From: Amphiscolops sp. MND2022
Lineage: Eukaryota
Assembly (NCBI GenBank): GCA_964187785.1
Contig: OZ076418.1
Coordinates: 24,862,001-24,926,000, forward strand
Direction of reading: 5' to 3'
Length of the DNA stretch: 64,000 bases
Position numbers and translations under genes: made by a program
Shown here: positions 11,549-52,546 of the stretch, piece by piece
Layout: the number at the start of each line of letters is the position of its first letter
Numbering within the stretch: position 1 is the first letter of the stretch
Notes under the pieces: generated by a model
Databases searched by the model: none
Told to the model about the DNA's origin: nothing
Seen by the model: only the letters and a program-made list of their open reading frames with translations

Positions 11549-12113
11549 TGATTTTAGACGTTATTCCACAAATATCGCGATTTTAGACGTTATTCCCCAA
11601 AAAAGTGATTTTAGACGTTATTCCACGAAAATAATGATTTTAGACGTTATTCTACAAAAATACGGTAATTTTAGACATTATTCCAGTGGAATATAATGTA
11701 TTTAGATCTTATTCTACCAAAATAGAGTGATTTTAGACGTTATTCCACAAATATAGTGATTTTAGACGTTATTCCCCAAAAAAGTGATTATAGACGTTAT
11801 TCTGCAACAAAAATGATTTTAGACGTTATTCTACAAGGATACGGTGATTTTAGACAATATTCCAGTGGAATATAGTGTTTTTAGATCTTATTCTACCAAA
11901 ATTCAGTGATTTTAGACGTTATTCCACAAATATCGCGATTTTAGACGTTATTCCCCAAAAAAGTGATTTTAGACGTTATTCCACGAAAATAATGATTTTA
12001 GACGTTATTCTACAAAAATACGGTAATTTTAGACATTATTCCAGTGGAATACAGTGTTTTTAGATCTTATTCTACCAAAATAGAGTGATTTTAGACGTTA
12101 TTCCATAAATATA
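11549..12113 (+). repeat. Satellite array 2 (about 3 HOR units)
   Basis: Same monomers as array 1; begins at the junction caccaaTG|attttagacg. Confidence 0.98.
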
Positions 12114-12898
12114 ATATCAGAAATGAAATACATTGTCCAAAATTCAACTGAAATTTTTGGATTAGAATTTTTCATTTTCGAAAAATTTTTTGATTTTTAT
12201 TCTCGAAAAACACCTAAGTTTTCAACTCACGCGGAAAACTTCAACAGAAATGCTCGCAAAAACCTTTAATAATCCTTCTTGTTAGTTTGTCATATTTTCT
12301 GAAAATATTTGACGCTGAAAAGGTTGAAAAAATAATTCAAACTTCAACCAATCAAAACAGCCTAATTTTGATATTCCGTTCTAAAGTAGTCCCTAAAAAT
12401 GCCGTCTAGAACTTTGTTATGGAATTGGTTTTGTTTCTCCTAACCCGAAAAGTGATAAATATTGTCTATTCCGACAGTATTCATGCAAGAAAAAAATTTT
12501 TACACCGAAAAAAATCCCAGTAATACGAAATTGTTTGCCACACTGGCACACGTAAAAATTTTGTTTACATCATATGCACTCATAAAATTTGAGGTTTTCC
12601 CCGCAAAAACATGGAAAATTTCGCGGGGAATTTTTCTTGAACTTCCTTGATGTTGCTCTGAAAACCCGCCAAATTGTATAGAAATTCTAATAAAAACCTG
12701 AAGAAATAGCATTGCATCAGGGAAATACTTTAGCATTAATGATTTTCCATGAAACTCCCAAAATCATGCTAAAAGTGCTTGGTAGACTATAAAATCATGT
12801 AAAAGTTTCAAGCAGTTTCAACTAGGGCTACCTTCTTTCCGATAACTTTGCAAAGAGGCCAATACCTCAATACCTACTGCTTCATTGATATTCACCAA
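12114..12898. repeat. ~790-bp spacer, copy 2
   Basis: I found one substitution relative to copy 1 (12199). Confidence 0.97.
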
Positions 12899-15375
12899 TG
12901 ATTTTAGACGTTATTCCACAAATATCGCGATTTTAGACGTTATTCCCCAAAAAAGTGATTTTAGACGTTATTCCACGAAAATAATGATTTTAGACGTTAT
13001 TCTACAAAAATACGGTAATTTTAGACATTATTCCAGTGGAATATAATGTATTTAGATCTTATTCTACCAAAATAGAGTGATTTTAGACGTTATTCCACAA
13101 ATATAGTGATTTTAGACGTTATTCCCCAAAAAAGTGATTATAGACGTTATTCTGCAACAAAAATGATTTTAGACGTTATTCTACAAGGATACGGTGATTT
13201 TAGACAATATTCCAGTGGAATATAATGTTTTTAGATCTTATTCTACCAAAATAGAGTGATTTTAGACGTTATTCCACAAATATAATGATTTTAGACGTTA
13301 TTCCCCAAAAAAGTGATTATAGACGTTATTCTGCAACAAAAATGATTTTAGACGTTATTCTACAAGGATACGGTGATTTTAGACAATATTCCAGTGGAAT
13401 ATAGTGTTTTTAGATCTTATTCTACCAAAATAGAGTGATTTTAGACGTTATTCCACAAATATCGCGATTTTAGACGTTATTCCCCAAAAAAGTGATTTTA
13501 GACGTTATTCCACGAAAATAATGATTTTAGACGTTATTCTACAAGGATACGGTGATTTTAGACAATATTCCAGTGGAATATAGTGTTTTTAGATCTTATT
13601 CTACCAACATTCAGTGATTTTAGACGTTATTCCACAAATATCGCGATTTTAGACGTTATTCCCCAAAAAAGTGATTTTAGACGTTATTCCACGAAAATAA
13701 TAATTTTAGACGTTATTCTACAAAAATACGGTAATTTTAGACATTATTCCAGTGGAATATAATGTTTTTAGATCTTATTCTACCAAAATAGAGTGATTTT
13801 AGACGTTATTCCACAAATATAGTGATTTTAGACGTTATTCCCCAAAAAAGTGATTATAGACGTTATTCTGCAACAATAATGATTTTAGACGTTATTCTAC
13901 AAGGATACGGTGATTTTAGACAATATTCCAGTGGAATATAATGTTTTTAGATCTTATTCTACCAAAATAGAGTGATTTTAGACGTTATTCCACAAATATC
14001 GCGATTTTAGACGTTATTCCCCAAAAAAGTGATTTTAGACGTTATTCCACGAAAATAATGATTTTAGACGTTATTCTACAAGGATACGGTGATTTTAGAC
14101 ATTATTCCAGTGGAATATAGTGTTTTTAGATCTTATTCTACCAAAATTCAGTGATTTTAGACGTTATTCCACAAATATCGCGATTTTAGACGTTATTCCC
14201 CAAAAAAGTGATTTTAGACGTTATTCCACGAAAATAATGATTTTAGACGTTATTCTACAAAAATACGGTAATTTTAGACATTATTCCAGTGGAATATAAT
14301 GTTTTTAGATCTTATTCTACCAAAATAGAGTGATTTTAGACGTTATTCCACAAATATAGTGATTTTAGACGTTATTCCCCAAAAAAGTGATTATAGACGT
14401 TATTCTGCAACAATAATGATTTTAGACGTTATTCTACAAGGATACGGTGATTTTAGACAATATTCCAGTGGAATATAGTGTTTTTAGATCTTATTCTACC
14501 AAAATTCAGTGATTTTAGACGTTATTCCACAAATATCGCGATTTTAGACGTTATTCCCCAAAAAAGTGATTTTAGACGTTATTCCACGAAAATAATGATT
14601 TTAGACGTTATTCTACAAAAATACGGTAATTTTAGACATTATTCCAGTGGAATATAATGTTTTTAGATCTTATTCTACCAAAATAGAGTGATTTTAGACG
14701 TTATTCCACGAAAATAATGATTTTAGACGTTATTCTACAAGGATACGGTGATTTTAGACAATATTCCAGTGGAATATAGTGTTTTTAGATATTATTCTAC
14801 CAAAATTCAGTGATTTTAGACGTTATTCCACAAATATCGCGATTTTAGACGTTATTCCCCAAAAAAGTGATTTTAGACGTTATTCCACGAAAATAATGAT
14901 TTTAGACGTTATTCTACAAAAATACGGTAATTTTAGACATTATTCCAGTGGAATATAATGTTTTTAGATCTTATTCTACCAAAATAGAGTGATTTTAGAC
15001 GTTATTCCACAAATATAGTGATTTTAGACGTTATTCCCCAAAAAAGTGATTATAGACGTTATTCTGCAACAATAATGATTTTAGACGTTATTCTACAAGG
15101 ATACGGTGATTTTAGACAATATTCCAGTGGAATATATTGTTTTTAGATCTTATTCTACCAAAATTCAGTGATTTTAGACGTTATTCCACAAATATCGCGA
15201 TTTTAGACGTTATTCCCAAAAAAAGTGATTTTAGACGTTATTCCACGAAAATAATGATTTTAGACGTTATTCTACAAAAATACGGTAATTTTAGACATTA
15301 TTCCAGTGGAATACAGTGTTTTTAGATCTTATTCTACCAAAATAGAGTGATTTTAGACGTTGTTCCATAAATATA
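12899..15375 (+). repeat. Satellite array 3 (about 14 HOR units)
   Basis: Same 179-bp HOR; its 3' part repeats rare variants of array 1 (57-bp deletion near 14692, atatattg at 15133) at offset 4612. Confidence 0.98.
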
Positions 15376-16161
15376 ATATCAGAAATGAAATACATTGTCC
15401 AAAATTCAACTGAAATTTTTGGATTAGAATTTTTCATTTTCGAAAAATTTTTTGATTTTTGTTCTCGAAAAACACCTAAGTTTTCAACTCACGCGGAAAA
15501 CTTCAACAGAAATGCTCGCAAAAACCTTTAATAATCCTTCTTGTTAGTTTGTCATATTTTCTGAAAATATTTGACGCTGAAAAGGTTGAAAAAATAATTC
15601 AAACTTCAACCAATCAAAACAGCCTAATTTTGATATTCCGTTCTAAAGTAGTCCCTAAAAATGCCGTCTAGAACTTTGTTATGGAATTGGTTTTGTTTCT
15701 CCTAACCCGAAAAGTGATAAATATTGTCTATTCCGACAGTATTCATGCAAGAAAAAAATTTTTACACCGAAAAAAATCCCAGTAATACGAATTTGTTTGC
15801 CACACTGGCACACGTAAAAATTTTGTTTACATCATATGCACTCATAAAATTTGAGGTTTTCCCCGCAATAACATGGAAAATTTCGCGGGGAATTTTTCTT
15901 GAACTTCCTTGATGTTGCTCTGAAAACCCGCCAAATTGTATAGAAATTCTAATAAAAACCTGAAGAAATAGCATTGCATCAGGGAAATACTTTAGCATTA
16001 ATGATTTTCCATGAAACTCCCAAAATCATGCTAAAAGTGCTTGGTAGCCTATAAAATCATGTAAAAGTTTCAAGAGTTTCAACTAGGGCTACCTTCTTTC
16101 CGATAACTTTGCAAAGAGGCCAATACCTCAATACCTACTGCTTCATTGATATTCACCAATG
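15376..16161. repeat. ~790-bp spacer, copy 3 (continues into unique flank)
   Basis: I found 3 substitutions and a 1-nt deletion relative to copy 1; after caccaatg it runs into unique cctcaac... rather than satellite. Confidence 0.97.
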
Positions 16162-18029: not shown

Positions 18030-18225
18030 TGTTGTATCTCTGTTCTAGCTAGTTAAAGAATGTAAGAGATCTAAGAATTAACTTGTTTCCACTGATGTCT
18101 TTTGTATCACTGAGTATAGACATTCATCTGCGCTTAAGTGGCAGGACTGGTATTTAATATAAATAACATAAAGAAAGCAGACTAATCAGTTTCTAAAGTT
18201 TGTGAGAGTTCGTCTGTCCTCTACA
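18030..18225 (-). repeat. G1 3' LTR
   Basis: Direct repeat of 23923-24118; followed on + by a pyrimidine tract (PPT on -). Confidence 0.98.
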
Positions 18226-18243
18226 TTCCCCCTTCTTCTACTA
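18226..18243 (-). promoter_or_regulatory. G1 polypurine tract
   Basis: AGTAGAAGAAGGGGGAA on the - strand abutting the 3' LTR. Confidence 0.9.
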
Positions 18244-18516
18244 TTGGCTGATATCTCTGCCAATGGGGATTCCTGCTTTCTGATGTGGCGGTTGTTGTTC
18301 CTCCACTGGTCCAGTTTGTGGCGGACGGTTGACCGTTCCTGGCTGTTTTGTTTGTCACGGTTGTTGTTTAGCCGTAACGTCAAGATTTTGTTTTGTGACC
18401 GGTTTACTGGTTGTTGCTCCCCTCCTTCGGTTTGGCTTTTTGTTGATCCGGTGTGGCTTCCGAATTCAGTCTGTTTACGGTGTTTCCTGTAATCATGACA
18501 AATTGGGTTATTATAC

Positions 18517-19077
18517 CTAAAAATAGGATTTTGTTTTTGTCAGTCTTTTCGATCTGCGTACAGGTTCTTTTTCTTCGGTTTCAATTTCGGTGCTTGAGCT
18601 CAGATTACTTGCTAGTTCTAATTCAGAGTTTTCCAGGTTCTCTGCTAACAATTTTGTGCTATTATCAGTAAGTACCTTACCGTTTTGGTCTCGGATGAAA
18701 ATTTCTTGCTCTGCGCTATTAGCGTCTTCTATGGCACGGTCTAATTCCGTGTCCGTCATGTTTGACGTTGTGATTGTCAGCGGGCCTATGTTGTTTCCCG
18801 GCATAGGTGTGTTGGCTGTATTTAGGCTGGCACGGTCTCTGATTAATTTTGGGCGTCCTCGTCCGAGTGTGCTCTTCTTGATGGTTGTGTCTATGGAGAG
18901 CTCTGGCGTCTTTGGGCTGTCTATTTCCATTGGTGGTGTTTCCGATTTGGTGTCCGAGTAGATTATCTTTGCCCGCTGATGTTTGGATGGTGATTTGACA
19001 AATCGGCCGTCCGGTCCGCGTGGCCCAATTCCTCTGTTGGTGTTTTCCTGGTTAAATTCAATAGGTTTACTTATCAT
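18517..19077 (-). pseudogene. G1 pol C-terminal tail (frameshifted) with AT-hook-like GRGRPK
   Basis: Continues the integrase reading direction; KKSTLGRGRPKLIR at 18847-18879, basic PVRRSKR near the end. Confidence 0.75.
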
Positions 19078-19088
19078 TTTTCGATGTA

Positions 19089-19955
19089 TTACCCTTCCGT
19101 TTGGGTGGTTACTGTATGATTTGTGCCCGATATTGCTAGCTGTGGTTTATCGGAATATGCACTTTCTAGTTTATTTCGTTGGTGTTTTTTCTCTAGAAAA
19201 AAGAAAGGACAACTTACTCCTTTTGAGTTTTTCTTCGGCTTCATGGGTAGCTGGTTAGACACACCGCCAGCTCCACTGAAAGAGTATACCTGTAAGGTAT
19301 CTGGTTTAGCTGAAACGGAACGTTTTGTTAGCTTTTCAATTTCATCCAGGTTTAGTAAGTTACTTATTTCCGTGTTCGGTTTTCTACCGTAGTGTAGTTC
19401 GAAAGCGGATTTTTTCAGTCGGGTGTGAGGCGTTTTTCTCATTACGTCTAGGGATATATCTAGGGCTTTCCCGAAACGTTCTCCGGCTTTATTGTTTGTT
19501 AGTAGGTTTTCTTTCAGAGTTCTTACTCCACGCTCTACCAGGCCGGTAGGTGTCTGTATATACGGTGTCCCGTATATTAATTTTATGTAGTGTTTCTTGC
19601 AGAAGTCTCTGAAGAGCCGTCCCGTAAACGCGGTGGCCTTATCGGTTCTAATTATTTTCGGTATGCCGTTTAGACGAATGTATTGGTCGACAATTTTTAC
19701 TGCCGTTTCAACGTCCGTTGAAGTGCAAAAACTGGCCGCTGGCCATTTACTGTACCGGTCCATGGACAATAAGATATATAATCGACGGTTGTTTTCCGTC
19801 ATTGGACCGATGAAATCCAGTTGAATTTCTTCGTTTGGATTATCCAATGGTGGAAGACTATTTATTTCCGTGCTAGGTATGTTAGGTTTTATGTTCTTAC
19901 CGGACATTTTGCAGAATAGACATGTTTCACATTTCTTTTGAATTGCCTCGGTCAC
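19089..19955 (-). pseudogene. G1 integrase
   Basis: HHCC half CxxC (CETCLFC region), QLDFIGP, IRTDKATAF, GLVERGVRTLK giving the D-D-E triad. Confidence 0.97.
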
Positions 19956-22135
19956 CAGAAATGTCGTGCTGCAAGGGACATTTTATTGATGGCTGGATGG
20001 CCTTTGTGCAGGAGGCTGATGATGGTCGCTCTTGAGTTTTTGAGGACAATAATTTTGTCTTCGATGAAAACCAGACCGAATCGGCTTGATAGCTTTCTTT
20101 TGTGCATTTGGTATTCTTCGGGAATCAACTCATGCTGCTGTCGTTCCAAGCTAACAAGTGTCTTCAGTAATGTGGGTTCATTGGTGGTCTCGTTCATCAA
20201 TAATTGTAAATCCGTTGAGAAATTCTTTTCGGTCTCTCGCACGGCTTGTTCAAGGTCCCAGGTGTTTTCGTCCAGTGCAGCTACTTTGGGGGCGTGCCCC
20301 ATTTTCACGTATTGCACGCTTTTCACTCCTACATAGCGTGCCCAATTCCATGCTGGTACTTCTAAGATGGACGGGTCTTGGTCCGTCTCTGACTCAATTT
20401 CGCCTTCTTCCATGGGTATTTGGGCGATTTGGTGTTCCGTGTTTGCTGTTGCCGATGATGGTCCTGGCTTGTCGTATTGGCTCTGGTCGTGTTGTTGTTG
20501 TTGGACCGGTGTTGGTCGGTCCATCTCCCAAAATGGATCTACTGTCCACTGTTCCGACCCTCTGGTTTCTGGCTGGAAGCCGCCACTTTGTTGCGGGCCA
20601 ATTCTTTGTCTCAGGTCTCCCTGATGTTGTTCTTTCATTATTTGTTGTAATCGCTCCTCGATTACTTTTCTCTCATTTCTGAGGATTTTTGGTTCGTGGT
20701 ATTTTTTCCACTTCCCCCCGGTTAAACGGTAAATGCCGGACTTTACTATGTTCCTCCACCGTTGAATTGATTGAGTGGTTTCGGGTGATGAGTCTGCTGC
20801 TTCGAGATTATCAATTGTTCGGGCGTCCATTGTTATTTTTGAATTTGATGAGTTTTTTAAGTGATGAATTTCACGTGTGGACGGTGAGTTGTTAAGGCAA
20901 TCAATGGCGTTTTGTTCACGCGTTTCTCGTGACCGCGGTTCGTTGTTTGTTTTGCGTTCGATATCCGTCAATCCGTTCTCTGATTGGTTAGTGTGGTTGC
21001 TAAGGCAACCATATTTGGAGATGAATTTGTAGTGCGGCAAGATGTTGTTAATTACGTATTCTTCGTCGTATACGTCATCCGATTGCGGCGGCACTGACGG
21101 ATTTCTGCTCAAGTAATCCGTGAGTGCTAGATGCTTGCCTGTGATATGGTTCACGTTTATTGTGAAATGTGCTAATCGTTCAAGCCATCTTGTTAGCCGT
21201 GCGCTGTACGTTTTATTGGATCGGTTTCGCTTTATCAGCGGTTCTAATGCTTGGTGGTCCGTGAGTAATTTAATCGGTTTGCCGTAAATATATAGTCGGA
21301 AGTGTTCTAGGCACCAAACTACTGCTAATAATTCGAGTTCGTTAATTGCGTATTTCTTTTCAGTGTCGGATAGAAATCGGCTTGCGAAACCGATCGGTTT
21401 TAAATTTCCGTCCGGTTGTTCTTGCCATAGCGTCGCATCGAGGCCTTTCGTACTGGCGTCGGTTGTTATCACGTTTTGGTAGTCTGAATTGTAATGAGCC
21501 AGACACGGTATTTCTGTGATCTTTTGTTTTAGATTTTCGAAGGCCCGTGTTTGTTCTTCCGTCCATAACCATTCGGTGTCTTTCTTTAATAGTTGTCTCA
21601 AACTGTCCGTCTGTGCTGATAAATTGTCCATGTATTTGGACAGGTTTTGGATGGCACCCAAGAATGATTTGAGTTCTTTCTCGTTGTTTGGCTGTTTCAA
21701 ATTTTTTATTGCCATTAGTTTGTCCTGTAACGGTCTGATACCGTTTTGGTCAATTTCGAGGCCAATCCATTCGATTTCCGTTTTAAAGAATTCGGATTTG
21801 CTTTCGCTCAGTCTGTATCCGGCGTTTTCTAGCCTGGTTAATACATCCACCAGTTCTTTTTTGTGTTGCTCTTTGGAGCTTTTTGTTACCACGATTATGT
21901 CGTCCAACCATGCTGGGTGTTTGTTTTCCAGTGTTTGGTCAATTTTTTCTCGAAAAATTGTTGGAATGTCCGCTAATCCGTAAAACCCTTTCAGGAAACG
22001 GTAGTAACCGGTAAAGTTTCCACCGGTTACGGCAAATATGCACAGGTTTCGGGCTTCTCTGGATAATAGTAGTTGACCGTATGCGTAATTCAGTCGAATT
22101 TTAGATCCATATTTCGTCTGCCGGTCTGTCCGCAA
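19952..22135 (-). pseudogene. G1 RT - RNase H - long linker - integrase N-terminus
   Basis: YAYGQ, GFYGL, WLDDIIVV (RT catalytic motif), ITTDASTKG and INELELLAVVW (RNase H), HKGHP (HH of the integrase zinc finger). Confidence 0.97.
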
Positions 22136-22203
22136 TTTTCCTGGAGATTCTGGAAATTAATTCCTCCATGTTAGGCATTTGTGCCTTTCTCTTGATGGTT
22201 ATC

Positions 22204-23882
22204 TCATTTAAATTTCCTTGAATCTAGGGCGATTTTTACCGATTTATCTTTCTTTACGGTGATGACTGCCGGGCTAACAAAACAATTCTCGTCGATGTTG
22301 TTTGCTTTTTCTATGTGGCCTTGTTTCATTACTTTGTTTATTTCCTTTTCAACCGATTGCTGTAAGTGAATCGGTATTGGTCTTCCTTTTTGTTGGATTA
22401 GTCTCGCGTCTTCTTTCAGCTGTATTTTTACTTCTAATCCTTCCACGGTGTGGTGTTCGTGAAAGAGTTTTTTGAATTTTCTTTTCAAGGAAGTAATATC
22501 CGGGTCTTCTGTGACGTGGTTTATCTGGGGACCGGTTCTACCGGTGTCCAGTGTGATTCCCAGTTTTTTCATCCAGTCCAATCCTAACAAGGGATTGGTT
22601 TTCTTCGTGGTTATCAAGATTTCCAGATTATTTTGTTGTCCGTTTATTTCTACTGTTGCGGTCGTTTTTCCTTCGAATCGGATTTTGTTGTCATTTACGT
22701 CTCTATATTCCGTTTTCAGCGGTTTCACCGGTGTAATCCTGTTGAAAAGTGATTTTGGTATTAGTGTCACCGGTGATCCGCTGTCTATTATGAACTTGAT
22801 TGGTCGGTTATTGACCAATGCGGTGAGAGTGAAAAAGTCTGGACCGTCTTTTTTCATTTGACGGGTTGAATGGACCTTCTGGTTGATGCAATGGATTGTG
22901 TTCGGTGACCAGTCGTCTTCCTCCGCACTACTGGTTTCTTGTTCCTGTATGCGGTTTATTTTCTTGTTTGTTCTGCAACATTTCCCGCAATGGCCGATCT
23001 GTTCGCATTTTGCACATTTCTTCCCTCTGGCCGGACATTCGTGCTGTCTCGACCAGTTTGGGGCTCCACATTTATTGTAGTCCATTTTCTTGAATTTGAT
23101 CGGTTTATCTGTTTGTTCTTTGAAACTTTTTGCTTTTCTTTTGTTGAGGTATCTGATCTTTTTTTCTTCTTCTGTTTCGGGTGAGTCATTTAGTTTCTCG
23201 TACATGTGTTCGTGTAGTGCATCAGTGATTGCTTCCACTGACATGTCACTTTTTCTGATTTTTTTCTTGAGGTCGTAATCGCCTGTCGATTTTCCAATTA
23301 CGGAGAGAAATTTTGATGCTAGTAATTCCGCTGCGGTTATTGTTTCGAATTCGCAGTTTCTTTCAATTGTCAGTATCCGTTTCCAGACATCTGCCGCTGA
23401 CTCTCCTTCTTCCCGTTTCAGTTCGAAGAAATCGGCTCTGCTGTGGTGAACATTCCGTTCTGGGGTGAAATGTAACCGGAACAGTGAGTACAGTTTGTGT
23501 AACGGTAATGAGCTTGGTTCTCTTTCTCTAACCGTTTTGGTCATTTCCGTGATAGCATTTTGTCCAATTGCCCACAGAAATATGTCCTTTATTTCTGCTT
23601 CTAATTGATCACGGTATTGTGGCAGTATCTCTTTGCTGTTTGTCATCGTTGATAGATCTAAATCTTTCGTCGTTTTATATACTGTGTGAACTTCCGCCAC
23701 CACATGTTTGCACTGGTGTAATCTTGTTTGTCCAATGTAGGAATGGTAAGTTTCTGTGTGCAGGTCCGTTCCGTGGTTCTATTCATTGTGTCGTTTGGTG
23801 GCGGTTGTCCGCGTTGGTGCGTTTCCGTCACCGTCCCGTTGGTACTTCCATTTATTGGAGAAGTATTTGTGCTGTCGTCCAT
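22204..23882 (-). pseudogene. G1 gag - protease - RT start (frameshift near 23690)
   Basis: Zinc knuckles (KCGAPNWSRQHEC; CAKCEQIGHCGKCC), protease FIIDSGSPVT, RT start SPAVITVKKDKSVKIALDSRK. Confidence 0.95.
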
Positions 23883-23904
23883 CAATCTTCAGTAACTTGT
23901 GAGG

Positions 23905-23922
23905 GTTACTCTAACTGCGCCA
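23905..23922 (-). promoter_or_regulatory. G1 primer-binding site TGGCGCAGTTAGAGTAAC (probably tRNA-Ser)
   Basis: Abuts the 5' LTR; TGGCGCAGT matches the 3' end of invertebrate tRNA-Ser (…ACUGCGCCA); tRNA identity is inferred. Confidence 0.8.
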
Positions 23923-24118
23923 TGTTGTATCTCTGTTCTAGCTAGTTAAAGAATGTAAGAGATCTAAGAATTAACTTGTTTTCACTGATGTCTTTTGTAT
24001 CACTGAGTATAGACATTCATCTGCGCTTAAGTGGCAGGACTGGTAATTAATATAAATAACATAAAGAAAGCAGACTAATTAGTTTCTAAAGTTTGTGAGA
24101 GTTCGTCTGTCCTCTACA
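23923..24118 (-). repeat. G1 5' LTR
   Basis: Direct repeat of 18030-18225. Confidence 0.98.
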
Positions 24119-26310: not shown

Positions 26311-26808
26311 AGATTCGACCAGTTGGACCGAAATCTTTGATTGCCACCAGTTGGTAAACCTCACAAACCAAATTGACGATCAAAATTCGTAAGCGAAGCT
26401 CAAACCTCGGTAAGTTCAAAATTATATTCCTTGCTCAATGAAAATTTTTTAGAAATTCCATTAACGGTGAGAAATTTAACGAAGGCGAAATTTCTATTCG
26501 AGTGTCTTGATTGTGAAGCTGATTTTTGTGTACAAAGGTATAAAATCTAGATGTATTTTGCCAATCGAATTTGAAATCAATTTTCACAGTGCTCAGAACT
26601 GTGATTTTTTTTTAAAAAAAAAGATCAAAACTGTTCTACATTTATAAAGCTAATATAAATAAGCTTGTATGTCTTTATGATCTCATCTCATTTTCCATTA
26701 CGCTAAGTCTTTCTTTCTCAATGATATTCTCAGCGCGGCTAGTGAAATGTTTGTGTATGTGTTGAAAAATTCGCTTTACTTCAGCAACGACTTAAAAGCT
26801 CGTGAAAA

Positions 26809-27515
26809 ATGTTGGCAATTCTTCTCCTGAACCTGTGGACGATTGGAGCATCAGAAGAAAGTAAGTTTCATTAAGTCATCTAATCTTCTGATAACTTCGA
26901 TGCTAGGTTCTTAACAGTGCCTGTTAAATTTCACTCGTGAAAACTTGTACTTTTTTCTACGTTCGAAAAAACTTCATGGGCGTCGAATTCGATGCAAACC
27001 AACAACCACCCGCACTACAACACCTGACATTCAAATTAATTCAAATCAATTGTCACTTGATACCATTTCAATGATCGGACCCAATTAAAAACTGAAAAAC
27101 CCATTATTAACTGTTTTTAACCTAATTGTTTTTGGAGAACTAACCTCAATTCAAACTCGAAAGTTATACTTACTCGAATAATACATCCAAAATCCTTCAG
27201 GACACGGCGTGAAATTTTCTCCCGCGCCATCAAAGCAACTTTCGCTACTCAAAAAGGAAGTTGAACAATTTCGCTGACTACAAAGCATGAGTTTTCCTTC
27301 CTTGCTTCTTTTCAGTTCTGAATTGTTCCTCCTGTGTGGACTATCACCGACTGTGCCCTGCTGTTAGAGACCCAAAATACCTGGAGAACTTTTTAGCCAA
27401 GCTCTCCACTTCCGATGCAGCACAGCTGGCCGAGGACAGTGTCATTGTGAAAGATGTCAACTGCTCTAACCCCGAGTATCTGCTTCGATGCCCGTTGTCA
27501 TGCGGAAGCTGTTAG
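26809..27515 (+). CDS. Spliced gene (coding exons 26809-26860 and 27316-27515) for an 83-aa secreted ShK-domain-like peptide
   Basis: ATG with A at -3; signal peptide MLAILLLNLWTIGA; phase-1 intron GTAAGT...ttttcAG with CTGAC branch-like site near 27275; exon 2 gives C-x6-C-x35-C-x8-C-x3-C-x2-C-stop. Probable 5' UTR intron 26410-26784 (GTAAGT...ttcAG). Confidence 0.82.
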
Positions 27516-27977
27516 TGATCTTTGAAGTCCTAAAAACTGTTTTTTTTTCAGAAACATTGCATCTAAAATTTTGAATTTCACAAAAACTTCCCTTGATGGC
27601 ATGATCATAAATTTTTTTCTCAATGCAGTACTCTTCAATCAGTCATTGTTCATCATGAACTACTTAACTTTCGAGCCTGCGTAAGAGTTCCACCATTTAT
27701 TGGGACACTTTCTACAAAATACACATCATCAAACAAACTTTCAATTGAATTGCCACATTCTATCTTCGAGTTGAAAGATCAATCGTTCTGAATTTCAGGC
27801 ACCCCTTGTTCAGGTAAGTTATTTCCTTATCTTTTTTTCTTCCCGAAAAGTAATGGTTTCAGTTTCAATCTATAGCCACGTCTGTGAATTGAATCAGTAT
27901 ACAAAGTTTTTTCGTCTTAAACCACTCGCTTAGGGACTACTCTTTCATCTATTGGTACTTACCCATCACTTATAACC

Positions 27978-28287
27978 AAACTTTTTTTTCCGCCCCCAGA
28001 AATTTATTTGTGAGTGAGGGAGGAAAATCATAATCTGTGTTGCGTTTTTTTTTCGAAATTCTGCCAAATCTCCACGATCTCCATCCACTTGACTACTTTA
28101 GTTACTTAACTATTTTAGTTACTCGACTAATTTAATTACTTGTTACTCCATTTTGTTATTAAAACCAAGGCACCATGGCACAGTTGGTTGTGCGTTTGCC
28201 TAGCAAACACGAGGTCGTGGGTTCGGAATTGTGCTGATGCGTTTCACTTTTACCGAAAACATCCGGGTTCTTAGCGGGCGTCTTGTT
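27978..28287 (+). mobile_element. Dispersed non-autonomous element R2, copy 2, with tRNA-Ala(AGC)-like cassette
   Basis: Homologous to 17597-17966; A box TGGCACAGTTGG, loop CTAGCAA, AGGTC variable region, B-box-like GGTTCGGAAT at 28169-28241. Confidence 0.75.
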
Positions 28288-28579
28288 GATATTTATCTGC
28301 ATTTATCAATCTATTTAGCTACATAGATTTCCCCCGACGCCAACTGCGGTGATAAAGCGTTTCAATTGAGACTGCATTTGATCAAAATAATATTTTCACG
28401 GTTTAAAACATGGTTCAACAGTTCGACTGTCTCATATGAAGCCCTCGACAAAAAACGTAGTGGAATTGCATTTTTGCATTATTCTACAACTGACCACTTC
28501 CAAGTGGGGACCTTTGAGGATTAAAAAAAGTTTGCCAATATCACAAAAATTTGTATTTGTGTTTTTTCTAAAAATTTTT

Positions 28580-31500
28580 AGTTAGAAAGAGTTACACACG
28601 GTTAACCGGGACCATTTAGGCCCAATGACTCATGTTCCAAACTGAAAACTTTATTTGATTGAGGTAAAAAACTTTTACTTAGAAAAATTCGTAAAAAGTT
28701 GGAGAGCCAAAACTACTTCCTCAGTTTTTGACGAACCTCTCACTAATCCCATAGGGCAGATAGACTTCACCCGTAAGGCTATTGCCTTCTCCACTGACTT
28801 TGTGAACGTGTGAGTTTTCTGGTTTTGCTGAAAAATAACCCGTGATTAATTAATTGGATTTGTATCTAACGTTTCACTCAGGTCTGTTTTCGGTTCTGCC
28901 GAAGTGTAGTTCGACTTTTTTAGTCTAGTGTGTGTGGGGTGGTTAGACTTACGTGAAAGCCAGTTCAAGCGCTTTTCCAACAAATGGTTCACTCGTTCTT
29001 ATGTTTGTTAGTAGATTTTCTTCTACCATTCGAACACCATTCTCTACTAGCCTTGAAGGGGTATGGATGCATGGTGTTCCTCATGCTAGTAAGATAAAAT
29101 GGGGAGCCCGTAAAAACCGACGCCTATTTGTTTTTGGGATTCCACTTACTTGAATGTTTTTACCGCCGTATTCTGCTCAATTTTTCTGGTGGCCATTTAC
29201 TTTGCATTTCAATGGAGAGTAGAATCTAAATTTTACGGTGGTGGTCTGTGACTGGTCCGATTAACTGGAACTATTTTATTTTCGAAAGAGGCCATACCGT
29301 GTTGACAGTTTTTTGTGTTGCCTGTAATCTTCCCGGAAGAATCTATGATTTTGTCTCTTCAGGCAGACTAGAGTTTTAGCAATTTGGGTTGTTTACTGTT
29401 TCTGTCTGCAACAATTGTCAGTCAATGGCGATTTCTTTTTCTTTTCTGGACGGTGCTTTCTAGATTCCAGCTGTTCATTTCCATGGAGTGTACTTCTAGA
29501 GCGTTGTCAATTTAAATGCAATGCACTCTCTTTTATCCGACGTAACTTGTCCAATTTATTGTCTGTACCTGTAGTACTGATGGTGGTTGTTACGAGTCAC
29601 TCGAAACTTCTTTTTCCAGTGGTGAGACTTCTGATTGTGTATTTGATGGGCCCGGTTGTTCTTGTTTTTGATTTGTGATAAAATTCTAACTCTTCTTTGT
29701 CGTGTGATAATGTTTCCTTGGGAATTTGACGGTGAAATGAACTGCTTGCAGGAAAAGAACTTTTATTGACTTTGCTGTGGCTGGATTTGGATTTAAACGG
29801 CCGCCTTTTCAAATATGCAAAGCGTTTTATCCTGGTATTTCCCCACGATTGTCCTTTCCTCACGAGGTAGGTTCGGATCTTGGTACTTCTTTATCTTTCA
29901 CAGGAGAATCGCCATGTTCTTGGCTCCACAAAGTTTCGCCAACGCTCTTGGAACTCTGTTGTTTACTGGGAAAAAATCCATTAATTCAAGACTTCCGATA
30001 GTTGTGCAATCTGAGTTGCTGCAGTTTACGGTGCATTTAAGGCAATGAAGACGGTTTGTTCACGCTTGCTGTTCGATGAGCGTTCGTTGTTTATTCTCGC
30101 AGTGTGCGGTTGCTTGCTGCTGGTCTGTTGTTAGTTGAAATGGTTCCTAAGACAACTGAACGTTGAACAAATAAACGCACAAAATGGAAGTACGGAGTTT
30201 GCTTCTTAGTTCATATATTTCCGTACATTTCATCTTTCTGTGCCGGTGCCATTGGAATTTTGTTGAGTTACTCTGTAAGTGTTAAATGCTTTCCCGCAAT
30301 TTGGTTGGCGGTAATTGTGAAGAGATCTAATCGGTCTAGCAAGGGATGTAATTGGGAGCTGCGTGCTCTATTTCATTGGTTTCATTTTGAAGTGGTTCCC
30401 GTGCATGCATTGTTAGTTTCTCGAATTACAGTCATGATGAGGCGGTAAACTTCTGGGCCCAAACCGTGAATAAATTTTCCAATTCAAAGTAGGGTTTATC
30501 GTTTCGGTGTGTTCAAAGTCAACGCTTGCGCTTCATTTTTTGCCAGAACGTGACCCCAGACACTTGGGTGCTTGCGTTCTATGTTGTTGTATTGCGACAA
30601 CTAGAATTGTAGTGGGCCGAGCACAGTATACAAGTGATTTGTTTTCAAGCTTTTAATTGCTTTCGAGTGTTGCTGTATCCAGTTTCAGTAGACTTTCTTT
30701 TTCAGACAAAAATCCTCAGTAGATCTGTTTGAACTAAAAGATGCTTCATACCTAGATCAAAACTGGATTGCTCCGAGAGAAAACTTTGATTATTTTCTCT
30801 TTTTCTGGGTTTTTCAGTCCTCGAATTGCATTTAGTGTGTCCTGTAACAATCTGAAATCGTTTTGGTCAGTTTTACGCTCCATCCAATTATATTAGGTTT
30901 TGACAAATACCGTTTTATTTTCACTATGTCTATAGCCTGAAATTTCATCATTCGATGGAGCGTCTAACAACTCACGCGAATGATGTCTTTAAATTTCTCT
31001 TTTGTTACCACAGGTAATTATTCGGACCACGTTGGATGTTTTTTCTCCATTGTTTGATCAATCGTCTCCATGATTATGGTTGGTATATCTGTCAGTCCAC
31101 GAAACTTTTTGGAAAACCTGTAATAGACAGTGAAGTTGCCTCCCGTGATTGCGAGTGTGCACAATAATCTTGCAGTTTTGGTTATTGGTAATTGAACGTA
31201 TGTGTAATCCAGATGAAAGTATGGAACTGAACTACTAAATTTTGTTCGTTGCCCTGTCCGTTTTTTTCTTGATTTTCGGGATATCGACTCCTCTATGTTC
31301 GGCATCTCTGCGTCCCTTTTTCCGGTTATTTCCTTGAGCCTGCGCAAATCTGAGGCTTTTCCATAAATTACGTCCTTGTGTACTACTGTGATCAACAGCA
31401 GAAATGGCGCAGTTCCGTTGAATTTGAATTTAAGTTTGAGTGTGACCGGTAACCCGCTCCCAAATACGAAGATGAATGAACGGTTGTTGACCAGTACAGC

Positions 31501-34380: not shown

Positions 34381-34605
34381 ATTCGATGAATGCTACATTC
34401 CAATACGAGCTCATTCCAATAAAATCTGCATCAGATCCAGGCGGGACGTTTAAAGGCTATGCCGGCGCAGACGCAGCCATTGACGGTGACGACACTCAAA
34501 CAGAAAACCAGTGTTTCTGTTCTGCTCTGGGCATGACTACAGAGTCGAGGTTTATTGCTAACATTCCCAAGTCCAGAGTGGATTCAATCGGTTTCAAGGG
34601 CCAAT
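34381..34605 (+). CDS. Putative internal exon encoding part of an F5/8 type C / fucolectin-like domain
   Basis: tttAG acceptor at 34379-34380, GT at 34606, symmetric phase 1-1, 225 nt; translation includes ADAAIDGDDTQTENQCFCS...IANIPKSRVDSI, resembling the AxxAxDG...C motif of this fold. Confidence 0.55.
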
Positions 34606-37600
34606 GTTAGCCATGTTTTACTTTTTAATTTCAGTAGAAATATCAAGTTTTTAAACAAGTGCGATGTCTCTAAACCCATTGTTTTTTGAACTTGTGGGTT
34701 TTTTGATTGCCAAGTTCATGTAGCATAACTGTGAGAACTTTTGAATTTTTTCATTTTTGCAAAAGTGTTCCTAAAGAAATGAAAATCTTCTCGTGATTCG
34801 ATCTATTTAGACAACGTGATTTTGAATGAATCAAAATTCTTTTTTCGTGAAACCATCTAGTCAACGTATTCAGTTTAGGAACTTAGCTGACCTTTGAAAT
34901 CACATTCATAATTTCTATCACTTTCATTTATGTAGCCCATTACTAATATGGCGAATAACACGAGATGCAGTGTCACTGCGATCTTTTAGTACATCATGTC
35001 AAAAGGCCTTCGGAACAAAACTGAGCACCTTCCAACCTCAATTCTTTGACAAAAAGAAGCGGAATGTTTTATATTTGAGAAGTCACTCCTGTTCTGAGCA
35101 CTAGTTCTTGCTTGAAAATTTCCATAAAGAAACCTCGGGAAGTTTTTGCTTCGGGCACCCAAACTTCGATGAAAATCAGGAACAACGTTGAAATAACGTA
35201 GAAATAGTGTATTTTGACCGCTTGAGTGTTATAACGAAAAACAGAAATAACATTGTTGAAACTGAAAACAATTCAGACAAATCCTAAACAGTCGTGTATC
35301 TTTTATAAGCACATTTTACTGAACAATATTTTGAAACACTTTGTTCGGGTGGAATAGCTGAATGAATTTGTTCTATCCGAAAACCTTAATTATTGAAAAC
35401 AAATAATTTGCATGAATGACTATCTACTACTGTGGTTCTCAATGCTATCAATGATTGACCGTTTCGTTTACTGGCAGCCGTCCACAAAAATAGTTTCCCA
35501 AATGAACAGGTCTTTCAACAATTGTTTAACCGTTCTTCTCCGCAGTCAAAGTGGCGGAAATGGTGTTCCATATACTATTACTTTGTTTCATTTCTCAGAT
35601 GCGTCCCTGAATTCTCTCGAAGACATTCAGTTTCTTTTTCAGTTAGTATGGTTCGTGGTACCACATTTGCTAAAACGTAATGTTTTGGTCAGAATCTCAT
35701 GACGTGCTTGGGTTGACAACGTTCAATGTGTTCTCTTCTCTTAAATGAGGGTATTGTTGTATTTCTAACTAATACTATGAAAAGAACAGGGTTTTCTAAA
35801 ATTACATCTCGTCTATACTCAAGCGTATGCTATGTATCAAGTAACACAAAGTGATGTATCAGTTTTACATCTAATGTTTGTAAACAATACGGCAGGTATG
35901 TCTATGACCGAAGTTCGGTAAAGGTCAGTTTCTTGATTGACGGGTGAACCGTATAACGCATTTCTTTCGGTGATACTTTTTTTAGTGGCAATGTGTTCAG
36001 TATGAACAAGGAATGTTCACTGTCTTGTCTGTTCATTTCTAAGAATCGCTGTTCGTTTCTAAGTCTTTCATTGTTCCCCTCTTGGTAACGGAAAGACTTT
36101 GCTTTTCTGTCACTACTTAACTGCTTGGGAAAACTTTCTGACGGCTAATTGGATCATCATCGCTGTAGGTACTCATTGTTATATTGAACTTCTGACTTGA
36201 AACTATTGCAAAATAGGACGTATGTAAGTAGGTATTGAAATGTTTTGTTTAAAACAGTAATAACGTGGTGAACAACAACGCATTAGTATACCAATTTTTC
36301 TTATTGCGCACTCGTTAGCAATCAATATCTAGTAATTTTGGGCACGTGACGACTTTTTTGGTGCTAGAGTTTATCTAAAAGTCATGAAAATAATCAGCTC
36401 ACTGATACACTGGCTATGATTGCTAAGTTAGTAAGGAAACGAAATACATGTACTGCCTTAAGAAGAATCACTGATGAATCACAAATGACGACTGGATATG
36501 CCAGTCGTTGATCATAAATTCTTCATTATTGTACAGAATATTTTAGTGGTTAACTTCATTGCTCTTTGCCAATTTTTGTGAGTACCTAGTTTCCACTCCT
36601 CCATGCAGTGTAGTCGACAGCGTCATAGTCATTCAGTTGTTCTTTCATGCTTACGATATGAGAGTTTTAGACATGTAGTTGCTGTTGTTTGGTCATCTAC
36701 GATATCGATCAATTGAAATAAGATAGCAAAACCCCCGGGGTTCGAATTTGATCAGTCCCATGAAATCTAGTTACATATCGCCGTCAACTATTTCACTTTG
36801 GTTTCGAAAAATAATTTCGGCCCTCTGTATCAGAGCTTGAGAACTTTTGCTTGACTTTTCTCATGGCAAGTGCTGTTCATAATGCTGTTGATTTTACATC
36901 TGTGTTCAGTTTTGGCCATCACGAACGTTGTCATGGTCTTCCACTGGGACTTGAGAAACGACTCCAAATGGAGTTGAGACATGTTTTCAGCGCTCTCCAA
37001 AATATTCGGCGGTTTGTTCATGGATTTGTTACTCTAAACATCAAGCGCTGTTCAGTTGTTTTTGATCGTTCCATGTCGCCCGAACCTGCTATTTCAGGTC
37101 TGCTGATTTTTCCAGTTTGCGTTTTTGAATATCCCAGTGCTGATCGAATCGAACAGCGCAAGCTTTTTTTACAATCAGTAAGTAGATAACCAAGCTCCTG
37201 CTGAGTATGTTTCATAAAAATTTTGTACTTTTCTTTCCGTCTTCGTGCGTTTCTGGTCGTCTTTTTTGTCTATCCCCGGTGTTGAAGTCTCTCGTTTTTT
37301 GTTCTGTGGTGTTGTTTGGTGATAAAGCTTGTGTCTTGTGATGGACTGTAAACAATTCTGCATAGTAACGTTGGTTATTTCCAATTCTCTGCCATAACAT
37401 GATTCTTTCATTGGCGAAGCTCCACTTTAATCTCTGTTCAACTCAGAATGGTCTCGTCGGCTTTCATTTTTTTCGTTTCACTGTGAAAATTGTTTGCAGA
37501 TAGTGGCAATTTATTCTATCTCATGGTAAGTCCAAGTTTTTCTGTACACTGCTGTCTCTTGATTTTGCTTTTGCATATTACTCGTCCAATCAGTTGTACC

Positions 37601-37607
37601 TGATAAT

Positions 37608-37826
37608 TGTAAAAGACCAATGGATAAATGAAGAAGTGAATTAAAAACTAAGATCTCTGAAGTAATGAGTTAGCACATATAGTGTGTCTTCAAAGTATCT
37701 AACACAATCAACTGAATCTATCGTTAGCACCGGCACTAAATGTTATACGATGAGAATGTTTCTTTGGCAGGTACTTCGAACTCAATGAACTTAAATGGCC
37801 ATGTGAATGGCATCTTCTTCTCTGCA
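37608..37826 (-). repeat. G3 3' LTR
   Basis: Direct repeat of 43343-43558; inner end approximate (small indel); no clear PPT survives. Confidence 0.92.
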
Positions 37827-38340
37827 GTTAGGGAAACCAGTCCTGATTCCCGGAGGGTTTCTTGTCGGATTGTTTGGCTTGCACTTTCTCTTTCTTCAAT
37901 TTTTGAAAGGGAGTTGTGAGGAATCTTCGAAGTGGGCTGGAGATGGTTCCTAAACGACCAATATTAATAATACTTTACCCCACCTAATTTCTCGGTCCGT
38001 CTAGCCCCCTTTATCCTATCTGATCTACGAAGATCGCTTGATTGTTCAAATGTTACCTTGTTATATTTTGTTTTATTTCTTTAATGTCAGCTTTACCTTT
38101 TTCTTTATTCGCTTTTTCGGTCTTAGTCGGTATTTCAGCGGTAACAGTTGCACGGATCGGGGTGGTTTGATCTGCGTCTTTCTGTGACGAGCATGGGCCG
38201 TGGCTGGTGCTACACTGAATCGGTGTTGTTGGCAACGGTGTATTCACTTCCGGTGTACCGTTTTCCTCTGGCTGAGTCTCTTCTGCGGCAGTGTTTTGTT
38301 CTTCGTGCTGTTGTGCCGTTGTTGTAACGGCTTGTGGTTC

Positions 38341-39568
38341 TTATATGTCCGTCTCTGTTTGAGTTGTAATGATGTCGCCGTAGGTGGATCGTTTCTGCGG
38401 CATCGTTGGTAAGGCGCGGCTGCTGCACGGTTCTTGTGGGCCCTTCCGAATTCCATACACTCTTTTATGTGTATCGCGGGAATCTCCTTGGCAGATTTTT
38501 CCACATCTGCAGCATTTGTTAGCTGGCCTCCGTTTTTCTTCCGGTTTTCTTGAAAGCTGAATTTTTACCGGTTTTGACGCTAGTCTTTTGTGTATTGTTT
38601 TCCCTTCAGACGTACTTATAGTATGTTTCGTTTCCTTTACTGCCGTTAGCAGTTTGTTAGTTTTGAATCTGCTTTTCAAAACGTTCGGTTGGTTTTCTTT
38701 TTCAAAAAAATGGTACTGTTTAAATTCCGACCTTAGTGATCTCGCTCTTTTCTTCGAATCGCTGAGGACAATATAGTCAGCCATCTCCCCTTCTGAGTCG
38801 TTTATTTTGAACATTTGGAGTTCCGTTGGCTGTGCTGAAATGTAATTGGTCAGTGTCGTTTTCCAATTAGATAAGAGGCATTCAGGTTGTTCGATTAAAT
38901 TAGTTCTCGCGGTGCGAGGTTTTTGTCCGAAATGCATCTGGAATGGCGTCATGTTTAATTTAGTGTGGGGAGTTTGTCTAATTGTTTTAATTGCTAAGTT
39001 AACACTCTCTTCGAATATTAATCCGTCTGCCATGTTTGCTCTAGCTAGCGATTTAATCGTCCGTATTTTTCTCTCAACTTGGTCAGTACCGGTGTGTAGA
39101 TTTGACGTGCATCTAATGCGTTTTATATTGTCTCGGTTACAAAACTCCTTGAACTCGTTACTTTTAAAACAACTGCCGTTGTCGGTGCGTACGCCCCGTT
39201 TCGTTCCGTTATCTGAACAGTACTTCGTTAAAAATTTTTAAACTGTCCGTGAGTCGGTATTTTTTACAAATTTGCGCCGTTGGCCATTTACTAAATCGGT
39301 CCACGGCCACCAGAATGTATACGTTACCACGAGTCTTCGATTTTATTGGTCCAGCGAAGTCCAATTGAATTTTTTGATTTGGTTCGGACAAAAATTTCAG
39401 TTTATTTTTTTCCGTGGACGCTAATTGTGTTACAAGATTTTTTCCTGACGCTCTGCAACTAGGGCAGTTTTCTGCTTTTTCTTGAATTTCTTGATGGATG
39501 CCAAGCCACCAAAAAGCTGCCGCTAGTTGGTCCATTTTTGTCGCAGATGGGTGTCCTTGGTGAAGCAT
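38341..39568 (-). pseudogene. G3 integrase (broken) with C-terminal extension
   Basis: HQGHP...CPSC, QLDFAGP, VRTDNG, tail containing CCRCGKICQGDSRDTH. Confidence 0.92.
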
Positions 39569-40459
39569 AGCTATGACTGTTGTCCGGATGTTTTCGGGAA
39601 TTATGATCCTGTCATTGTAAAAGAGAAGACCAAATCGGGTGGTTAGATGGTTTCTGTGTGACGATATGGGTCACATAGGGTGACGCATATGGGTGACGAC
39701 ATGGGTAGAATATATCTTTTGGTTGGTCTTTTTCTAGGGCGGCGATAGCACTTAAAAACTTCACGTCCCTCGCTGTTTCGTCCACAAGCATTGGAACTCA
39801 AGAGCGAAATCCTTCTCTGCCCTTTTGATTGTCGCCTCTGTGTGTTCGTTCTGGTCGTCGTCCATGGTGTTTGCTTTAACCGTCTGTTTCAGTCTGATTA
39901 GGTTGACAGTTTCGTGTTGCCGGAATTTCTTGAGTGCATTTATGGGACATTTCTCTTGTCTGACGTTGCTCACCTGGCTCTCGCTCGCTGTCTGATGAGT
40001 TTTGGATAATCCATGACTCGTGTTTGTTTTGTTGAAATTCTCTCATCGGTGTAGTTCCCAGAGTTTCACAATAATGAAAGAAACGGTTATAAATTAGGAT
40101 ATTTAGCTACACTATCCGCTTTCGTGCTTGTTGTGGGGGCCGATATTCTTGGAGTCGTTCGTGATCGCTTCCTTTTTTAACTATTCTCGTCTTCTCTGGT
40201 TTTAGAAGTCTTTTTCTCTCCGTCCAGAGTCGGTACGTGTCTGGGGAATGGCCTCTCTTTTTATAAATGAACTGCAAATCGTTTATTTTGGTATTTGGAG
40301 CAGATTGATCGAATTTTAACGGTTTTGAAGTTGGATTAACACCGTTCAATGGTAGTGAGGCTTCAAGCAAATGATTTTGTTTGCTTTGTTCACGCTTGCA
40401 TATGTCGTGCTGTGATTGGTCAATTTTTTGTCTCGGTTTTGTTCGTTCCGCGAATCTCT

Positions 40460-41801
40460 TTATGTTTCTGTCGTTTGGATGAAGTCGAATAAGCCGTGTA
40501 TTTGGTTTATCACGAATTCATCTTCGGATTCCGTTTCGGTTTGACCGCTTACGTCATTTTCCGTTTCGTTCCCAGCGGTGTTTACGATCGGAAAACGGCT
40601 TAGGCAATCCGTGAGCGGAATGTTTTTTCCAGTGGTATACTGTACATTTACATCGAAATGACTCAATCTATCTAACCACTGTGTTAACCTAGCGCTATAC
40701 TGCTTGTGCGCCCTATATCTTTTTAACAACGGCTGTAGTGCTTGGTGATCGGTTAACAAATTGACTGTTTTGCCGTAAACGTGGTATCTGAAATACTCTA
40801 ACCCCCATAACGCTCCTAGTAGTTCTAGTTCATTAATAGCGTGTTTCCTCTCACAGTCAATGAGGAATTTACTAGCGAATACGATCGGTCTGATTATTTC
40901 TCCTTCTCTTTGCCAGAGTGTTGCCCCGAGTCCCGTGTTGCAAGCGTCTGTTGTCACGTAGGTGTCCTTCTTTGGGTCGAAATGGGCGAGACATGGTGAT
41001 TCTGTAATCTCTTTCTTTAAATTTTCGAAATCACCATCTACTTCAGGCGTAACTCCCAACGTTTTTTTTTCAATAACTGTCTCATGGTGTCGGTTTTTTT
41101 GTACAAACTATTTATGAAATTTGACAAATGTGTTATGGAACCCAAGAAGGATTTTAATTCTTTGGGATTCTTTGGTGCGCTCAATTTCGTTATTGCTTCC
41201 GTCTTGTCTTTCATTGGTTTTACCCCGCTCTGGTTTATGTGGTAACCCACCCAAGTTATTTTTTGTTTGAGTGTTCAGTTTTCGTTTCGCTTGCTCTATA
41301 CCCAGCGTTTTGTAATTTGTTGAGTACTTCCCGTACTTCTTGTTCTTGTTCATCTATTGTTCCATTGGTTACACAGATGATGTCATCTAGCCACACTGGT
41401 GTTTTAAATTCTAGCACTTTGTCGATATGTTCTTAAAATACAGTTCGGATATCCGAAAGCCCATAAAAGCCTTTCTTGAATCGGTAATGGCGCGTGAAAT
41501 CTCCCCCAATTTTTGAGAATAAACAGTGTTTTGCTGCTTCTTTGGATAGTTTTGCCTGCCCATAAGCATAATCCAAGTCGATCTTTGAGATCCAAAGTTC
41601 TCCGTTTTTTTTCGTAATTTCTGCTGATACTGTGCTGATTAATTCTTCCATGTTTGGCATTGCTGCCTTTCTCTTGACACATGACTCATTTAGCTTTCTT
41701 GCGTCGAGGGCTATCTTCGCGGATTTGTCCTTTTTTATGGTGATGACAGCTGGTGAGATAAAACAGTTTTCCGTGGTTTTATCTGCTTTCTCCTTTTTCA
41801 A
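40460..41801 (-). pseudogene. G3 RT - RNase H fragments
   Basis: SPAVITIKKDKSAKIALDARKLN, KIDLDYAYGQ, TPVWLDDIICVT (41382-41393), VTTDACNTG, INELELLGALW. Confidence 0.95.
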
Positions 41802-41822
41802 TCAGCTTTTCCAGTTCATGTT

Positions 41823-43330: not shown

Positions 43331-43342
43331 CTGACTGTGCCA

Positions 43343-43558
43343 TGTAAAAGACCAATGGCTAAATGAAGAAATGAAATAAAAACTAAGATCTCTGAAGTAA
43401 TGAGATAGCACATATAGTGTGTCTTCACAGTATCTAACACAATCAACTGAATCTATCGTTAGCACCGGCACTAATTGTTCCACGATGAGACTGTTTCTTT
43501 GGCAGGTACTTCAAACTCAATTAACTTAAATGGCCATGTGAATGGCATCTTCTCTTCA
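43343..43558 (-). repeat. G3 5' LTR (PBS immediately inside, 43326-43342)
   Basis: TG...CA termini; PBS TGGCACAGTCAGCAATC on the - strand. Confidence 0.95.
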
Positions 43559-50020: not shown

Positions 50021-50101
50021 GGTTGACTCTTGCCTTTTGCCAACTTGAATGATGACAGGTATAACTGGCAGAAATCCAATGCTCTTCAGTGAGCAAAATG
50101 C

Positions 50102-52539: not shown

Positions 52540-52546
52540 TTTGAAC

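Follow-up and report, generated by a model that had tools for sequence, protein, structure and literature searches.

A probable eight-cysteine, ShKT-like module gene of a small family of secreted animal proteins in Amphiscolops sp. MND2022

Within the 64,000-nt stretch of contig OZ076418.1 analysed here, which we call the window, positions 26809-27813 probably represent the 5' part of a gene belonging to a small, unnamed family of secreted animal proteins. The best explanation of this locus, and one that we consider probable as a whole, is a gene for a secreted eight-cysteine module with an accessory-domain role, in which an apparent stop codon, TAG, would lie within a splice donor and be followed by a micro-exon at 27799-27813. 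The features concerned are the following.

Exon 1, 26809..26860, plus strand: ATG and signal-peptide-like segment, 17 codons and 1 base, with a phase-1 donor.
Intron 1, 26861..27315, plus strand: 455 nt, GTAAGT...TTTTCAG.
Exon 2, 27316..27510, plus strand: symmetric phase 1-1 module exon with the seven-Cys core.
Proposed intron 2, 27511..27798, plus strand: 288 nt, with the donor GTTAGT inside the last Cys codon and containing the TAG at 27513-27515.
Proposed exon 3 (micro-exon), 27799..27813, plus strand: GC ACC CCT TGT TCA G, with acceptor TTTCAG and donor GTAAGT.
Weak candidate for a later exon, 34381..34605, plus strand: first half of an F-type-lectin-like domain, AIDG...NQCFCS, 6.6 kb downstream.

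The two exons, their splice sites and the 83-aa product can all be read in the sequence as the original prediction described them. Exon 1 runs from the start codon at 26809 to the donor AAA|GTAAGT, exon 2 opens at 27316 directly after CTTTTCAG, and the two join in frame in phase 1 to give an open reading frame closed by TGT TAG (27510-27515), whose product contains seven cysteines, a C-x-D on its N-terminal side and C-x3-C-x2-C at the C-terminus. Exon 2 itself encodes C-x2-C-x-DYHR-x-CPA, a predicted helical spacer of about 35 residues, and a ShKT-like end of the form C-x8-C-P-x2-C-x2-C. The pairing of a predicted signal-peptide exon with a cysteine-rich exon likewise holds up: signal-peptide-like first exons with a consensus phase-1 donor number just seven in 128 kb (the window, both strands), and exon 1 is the sole one within 3.5 kb upstream of exon 2. 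Its signal peptide is similar in style to those of the relatives P0005 and L007. An acceptor-like TTCAG, noted by eye about 25 nt 5' of the exon 1 ATG (window 26775-26808), could be a trans-splice or 5'UTR acceptor. Two details of the earlier description need amendment: it spoke of both introns, while its own model contains only one, and the gene is not entirely hidden from the ORF track, since exon 2 is partly listed there as a 59-aa ORF with a GTG start (27336-27515). A search for a second copy of the module within the window found none.

A phmmer search with the exon 2 translation against 1.84 billion representative proteins returned eight matches, six of them over the full length of the query (P0001 and P0003-P0007; residues 3-65 of 65, E 9e-8 to 2e-4), and full-length matches to six eukaryotic proteins indicate that exon 2 is no chance open reading frame. 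The other two were dropped from the family, P0002 being a bacterial-type repeat protein and P0008 a fourfold repeat protein that has only the N-terminal motif in common with the module. P0008 (335 aa, from an ENA contig) consists of four near-identical repeats without a ShKT-like end, each containing C-S-S-S-D-T-H-R-H-C-Q-S-V-x-D-P-N-F, a sequence similar to the family's N-terminal motif. One more relative, L007 (a 373-aa ORF), came from a scan of JGI metagenome contigs, and the family alignments A1 and A2 comprise eight members: the window, P0001, P0003-P0007 and L007. The same library of 1.84 billion representatives holds no protein more than 50% identical to the window product by phmmer. 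A length-limited word search gave nothing with exon 2 as query, P0001 only with alignment A1, and P0006 itself only with P0006 residues 25-96.

Thirteen columns are invariant across the eight members, namely the seven cysteines and D, Y, R, P, A and P, and the window exon keeps all 13. The family motif can be written as C-x(1-3)-C-x-D-Y-[HN]-R-x-C-P-A, a spacer of 33-36 residues, and then C-x8-C-P-x2-C-x2-C. The spacer between Cys2 and Cys3, which has 35 residues in the window and 33-36 in the relatives, had been regarded as a loop insertion peculiar to this gene; it is of about equal length in all eight members, and since both it and the seventh cysteine are kept throughout, they are hallmarks of the family rather than oddities of the window gene. 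By its 13 invariant residues and its spacer length the window copy belongs with the eight-cysteine module family.

Four of these relatives come from the genome of the window itself. A 230-aa retroelement ORF of the window recurs without a single difference on contig ctg179136_209x_l of ENA assembly ERZ25074608, and positions 28202-30894 of that contig correspond to window 40033-37341, 2693 nt at 100% identity. P0001, P0003, P0004 and P0007 were called as prokaryote-style ORFs on further contigs of this assembly (loci L001-L004), so that the four can be taken as paralogues within the genome of the window. The eukaryote is represented in this public long-read metagenome assembly at about 100-200x coverage. 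Identity between the window copy and its paralogues is 33-40%. The remaining relatives, P0005, P0006 and L007, come from other samples, on short contigs that lack introns and resemble transcripts. When the four paralogue loci are read directly, each has a phase-1 acceptor 2-5 residues ahead of the first cysteine, as in the window; all module exons, that of the window included, are symmetric phase 1-1, and the paralogue introns are up to 3.7 kb long.

Of central importance for the gene model is an eighth cysteine. In all three transcript-derived relatives it stands 1-2 residues past the last ShKT-type cysteine (C-TPC in P0005, C-TSC in P0006, and CGKC-S-C-stop at the end of L007). In all four genomic paralogues a donor GT[AG]AGT opens within the last Cys codon, at its second base, making the intron phase 1, and the next exon starts G[CT]-x-x-TG[CT], which finishes the Cys codon and adds x-x-Cys. 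The readings are C-TAC-stop in L001, C-KSC-stop in L003 and C-DVC-stop in L004, all three of which terminate directly after the module, and C-VPC-SKARADAL... in L002, with a lectin exon thereafter. In 219 kb, counting both strands of the window and of the loci, AG|G[CT]N6TG[CT] with a stop directly after it turns up only four times, three of them at the paralogue sites.

In the window, the last Cys codon reads T|GTTAGT at 27510|27511, which places a donor exactly where the paralogues have theirs; GTTAGT is also the donor with which the L002 lectin exon closes. The proposed exon 3 would complete the last ShKT cysteine codon and add T-P-C-S with the eighth cysteine, giving the same C-TPC as in P0005. 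The strict acceptor-plus-pattern motif is found three times in 128 kb of window (both strands) and the loose pattern at 0.16 per kb, and the 1.5 kb past the TAG contain no canonical AATAAA. From the donor position in the paralogues together with the micro-exon of the window, the TAG at 27513-27515 is probably intronic and the cysteine count probably even; we think it quite probable, judging from the sequence, that coding continues beyond this TAG and that the cysteines number eight, the last of them predicted to follow a phase-1 intron as in the rest of the family. A micro-exon of 15 nt is unusual, which counts against the extended model. The suggestion that the seventh cysteine is unpaired and forms a covalent dimer becomes unlikely, given that this cysteine is invariant, that an eighth accompanies it in every transcript-derived relative and in the next exon of every genomic paralogue, and that the window has a matching exon.

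The resemblance of the module to ShKT domains is, at the level of sequence, real but sub-threshold. The Pfam ShK profile (PF01549) scores 13.9 bits on the window against a cut-off of 20.9, aligning profile positions 15-37 with the last 18 residues, and on the relatives it gives either 13.9-15.6 bits, again in the C-terminal half only, or no match; N-terminal pieces of 27 residues did not match this profile at all. Pfam ShK, which the original prediction had proposed as a check, consequently falls short of its gathering threshold across the whole domain, both for the window and for those relatives that it matches at all. The six-cysteine pattern with its C-x-D start and C...C-x3-C-x2-C end is present, together with two further cysteines, while the module lacks the compactness of a ShKT domain, which spans about 35-40 residues (37 positions in the profile) and has few residues between Cys2 and Cys3. 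Among PDB sequences the family profile is closest, though not significantly so, to OspTx2b (6buc, E 0.12) and then to ShKT-Ts1 (8sed, E 1), in alignments that cover the C-terminal half only and in which the cysteine spacing is identical; the C-terminal half is indeed ShKT-like, as had been claimed, in that its C-x8-C-P-x2-C-x2-C has the spacing of these ShKT peptides. Two AlphaFold2 models built on shallow alignments (7 sequences) are of low confidence (pLDDT 53.6 and 59.1) and contain helices only, placed at DYHR-x-CPA, in the leading half of the spacer and ahead of CP-x2-C; a Foldseek search with these low-confidence models against the PDB gave 0 matches.

Binding of type I anemone toxins to Kv channels is described as requiring a Lys-Tyr dyad (PMC13608440). 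Across the eight members of the module family, the position ahead of the conserved aromatic is occupied by V, Q, F, E, E, F, F and F, and never by K, and only the window has the lysine of 'PKY' in its spacer. No member carries the conserved dyad; the KY of the spacer, to which attention had been drawn, is confined to the window, and nothing found indicates the toxin activity for which the gene had been put forward as a candidate.

The relatives suggest a different setting for the module. P0005 is laid out as signal peptide, module, linker and two F-type-lectin-like domains, which match the F-type lectins FBP32 (3cqo, E 4e-4) and eel agglutinin (1k12, E 1.5e-3) and pass Pfam F5_F8_type_C_2 (PF22633) at 35.4 bits, the only lectin domains among the relatives to pass the Pfam threshold. 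P0006 has one F-type-lectin-like domain, and L007 has two, ahead of the module. At the genomic loci, the module of L002 is followed after 1.1 kb by a lectin exon, and in L001 and L003 lectin-like exons precede the module (369-512 and 4085-4285 in L001; 3461-3658 and 4055-4249 in L003). Both domain orders thus occur in the same genome, with the lectin upstream in L001 and L003 and downstream in L002, the latter order being also that of the transcripts P0005 and P0006. Since the relatives are mosaic proteins with F-type-lectin-like domains, it is doubtful that the window holds a stand-alone single-domain gene. Mosaic and tandem FTLD architectures are described as common in a review of F-type lectins (PMC5712786), in which a ShK-type partner domain receives 0 mentions. 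A literature search for ShKT domains with lectins or with eight cysteines found nothing relevant.

Downstream of the micro-exon the picture is less clear. A profile of the relatives' lectin domain detects the controls in L001-L003 at 1e-7 to 1e-16 and finds nothing clear in the window. The weak candidate at 34381-34605 came out on top of 3373 six-frame pieces in an hmmsearch with a profile of the relatives' first half-domain (E 0.014) and is a weak match by hhalign (probability 17.8%, P 0.0014). It has a TTTAG acceptor in the phase required by the micro-exon and ends in T|GTTAG, and it matches nothing in Pfam or the PDB. A profile of the second half of the lectin domain found no such half in the window, and the linker exon of L002, whose linker is also present in P0005, has no counterpart there. 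Three other segments (37186-37338, 55014-55091 and 56461-56649) were inspected as lectin pieces and rejected, and the end of the upstream 'ECLDCEADFCVQR' ORF (about 26500-26540) does not match the lectin profile. Beyond the micro-exon, the gene may continue as a diverged or decayed lectin part or as a short tail.

The surroundings are rich in repeats. A large tandem satellite array occupies 8010-15375, with related copies to about 16161; in it a higher-order unit of 179 nt, itself made of subunits of some 29 nt, recurs about 41 times at 76% matches, and internal segmental duplicates, 8287-11550 and 12899-16161, are 98-99% identical. A Ty3/gypsy-type LTR retroelement lies at 18030-24118 on the minus strand, with 196-nt LTRs (18030-18225 and 23923-24118) that are 98.5% identical, and encodes aspartyl protease, RT, RNase H and integrase domains in several long ORFs. 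A second LTR retroelement, at 37608-43553 on the minus strand, has 211-nt LTRs that are 94.8% identical, and RNase H-like and integrase-zinc-finger-like pieces in shorter ORFs, which make it look older and more fragmented. Pieces of a BEL/Pao-type retroelement follow on the minus strand at about 47870-52540 (Peptidase_A17 at 47871-48347, an aspartyl-protease fragment at 49550-50020 and a DUF1759 gag-like segment at 50714-51322); a 'CKLSCGVC' match at 49828-49851 was dropped as it lies within this retroelement region. Elements of the BEL/Pao type are an indication of an animal genome. Closer to the gene, on the plus strand at about 28150-28290, is a tRNA-derived, SINE-like stretch with a GGTTCGGAAT box-B-like motif, for which ARAGORN and Rfam made no call. 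Rfam and tRNA scans of the window as a whole found nothing. That the gene sits in gene-poor DNA rich in transposable elements makes a decaying copy possible.

The model that we propose is of a module of about 70 residues, consisting of the N-terminal motif, a spacer of about 35 residues predicted to be helical, the ShKT-like end and one more cysteine. A phase-1 intron would cut the codon of the last ShKT cysteine, and the exon after it would supply the rest of that codon and x-x-Cys; in the window, the TAG would fall inside the donor T|GTTAGT and 27799-27813 would yield C-TPC-S. The six ShKT-type cysteines presumably pair 1-6, 2-4 and 3-5, as in ShKT, and the two extra ones, which adjoin Cys1 and Cys6, may form a fourth disulfide that staples the termini. 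Both the pairing and the stapled fold are inferred. Such a module would be a rigid extracellular domain rather than a dimerising peptide, and its likeliest role would be that of an accessory or adaptor domain in secreted carbohydrate-recognition proteins, because in the relatives it is preceded or followed by one or two F-type-lectin-like domains. The window copy would have the signal-peptide-first layout of P0005, P0006 and L002.

If instead the gene stops at the TAG of 27513-27515, it would encode a stand-alone precursor of 83 aa (about 66 aa when mature) with seven cysteines, giving a free ShK-like peptide that might be a toxin, an effector or a covalent dimer. The reading frame and its stop are certainly present as read, a weak variant of the poly(A) signal, CATAAA, lies about 90 nt past the stop, no lectin domain can be demonstrated downstream, and three paralogues end at the module, so that module-terminal proteins do exist in this genome. 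We nevertheless regard a free peptide as decidedly improbable: the TAG arises from the donor motif GTTAGT at the conserved intron position of the family, a fitting next exon with consensus splice sites begins 288 nt downstream, every relative whose end is known or can be inferred has the eighth cysteine, and the Lys-Tyr dyad is not conserved. Also unlikely, in our estimation, is a non-functional remnant that is no longer expressed as protein, its exons 1 and 2 intact and its linker and lectin exons lost through rearrangement or retroelement insertion. Such a history would agree with the position of the locus between LTR retroelements and the satellite array, in 64 kb that contain no further recognisable host gene, with the missing linker of L002 and P0005, and with a lectin candidate that resembles just half a domain and has no second half. 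Exon 2, however, shows no stop or frameshift and has kept its 13 invariant residues at only 33-40% identity to the paralogues, exons 1-3 all have consensus splice signals, and with paralogue introns of up to 3.7 kb a distant exon is conceivable.

A bolder and rather doubtful proposal is that the module represents an undescribed family of ShKT-derived domains, marked by the helical insertion of about 35 residues and the terminal fourth disulfide. On this view the family would define, in certain marine or aquatic animals, a novel class of mosaic F-type lectin, and the window copy, for which no lectin part can be demonstrated, would be secreted as the module alone and have its own function, perhaps as an effector, a channel modulator or a ligand. 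Under the explanation preferred here, a secreted eight-cysteine module gene with an accessory-domain role, the novelties first claimed for the locus (a unique insertion, an unpaired cysteine and a stand-alone toxin gene) mostly vanish in the light of the relatives and the next exon. Should the family hold, the ShKT scaffold would be seen to tolerate a doubling of its size through a helical insertion and an extra terminal disulfide, and the mosaic F-type lectins would gain a new partner domain; this would interest those who catalogue cysteine-rich domains and invertebrate lectins, and it opens no long-standing question. There is also a caution for the reading of genes at the level of exons, in that a stop created by a GTTAGT donor can let a module exon mimic the end of a gene and can convert an even cysteine count to an odd one.

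Compared with the type I anemone Kv toxins, the module differs in that the Lys-Tyr dyad is missing from all its members. Compared with the known mosaic F-type lectins (eel agglutinin 1k12, striped-bass FBP32 3cqo), six relatives (P0005, P0006, L007, L001, L002 and L003) pair the module with one or two lectin-like domains, and what sets them apart is a partner of ShK-like type; in the window itself the lectin profiles gave no more than the weak candidate at 34381-34605. The likeness to ShKT domains (ShK, OspTx2b, ShKT-Ts1, nematode SXC) lies in a secreted, cysteine-rich module, predicted to be all-helical, with a C-x-D start and a C-terminal C-x8-C-x3-C-x2-C spacing identical to that of OspTx2b. 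Many ShKT domains are encoded by a symmetric phase-1 exon and serve as accessory domains in larger proteins, and the module, too, sits on a symmetric phase-1 exon and is in its relatives an accessory domain of larger proteins. It departs from ShKT in having about 70 residues rather than about 36 and eight cysteines rather than six, in its family-conserved Cys2-Cys3 spacer of about 35 residues, and in an invariant DYHR-x-CPA motif of its own.
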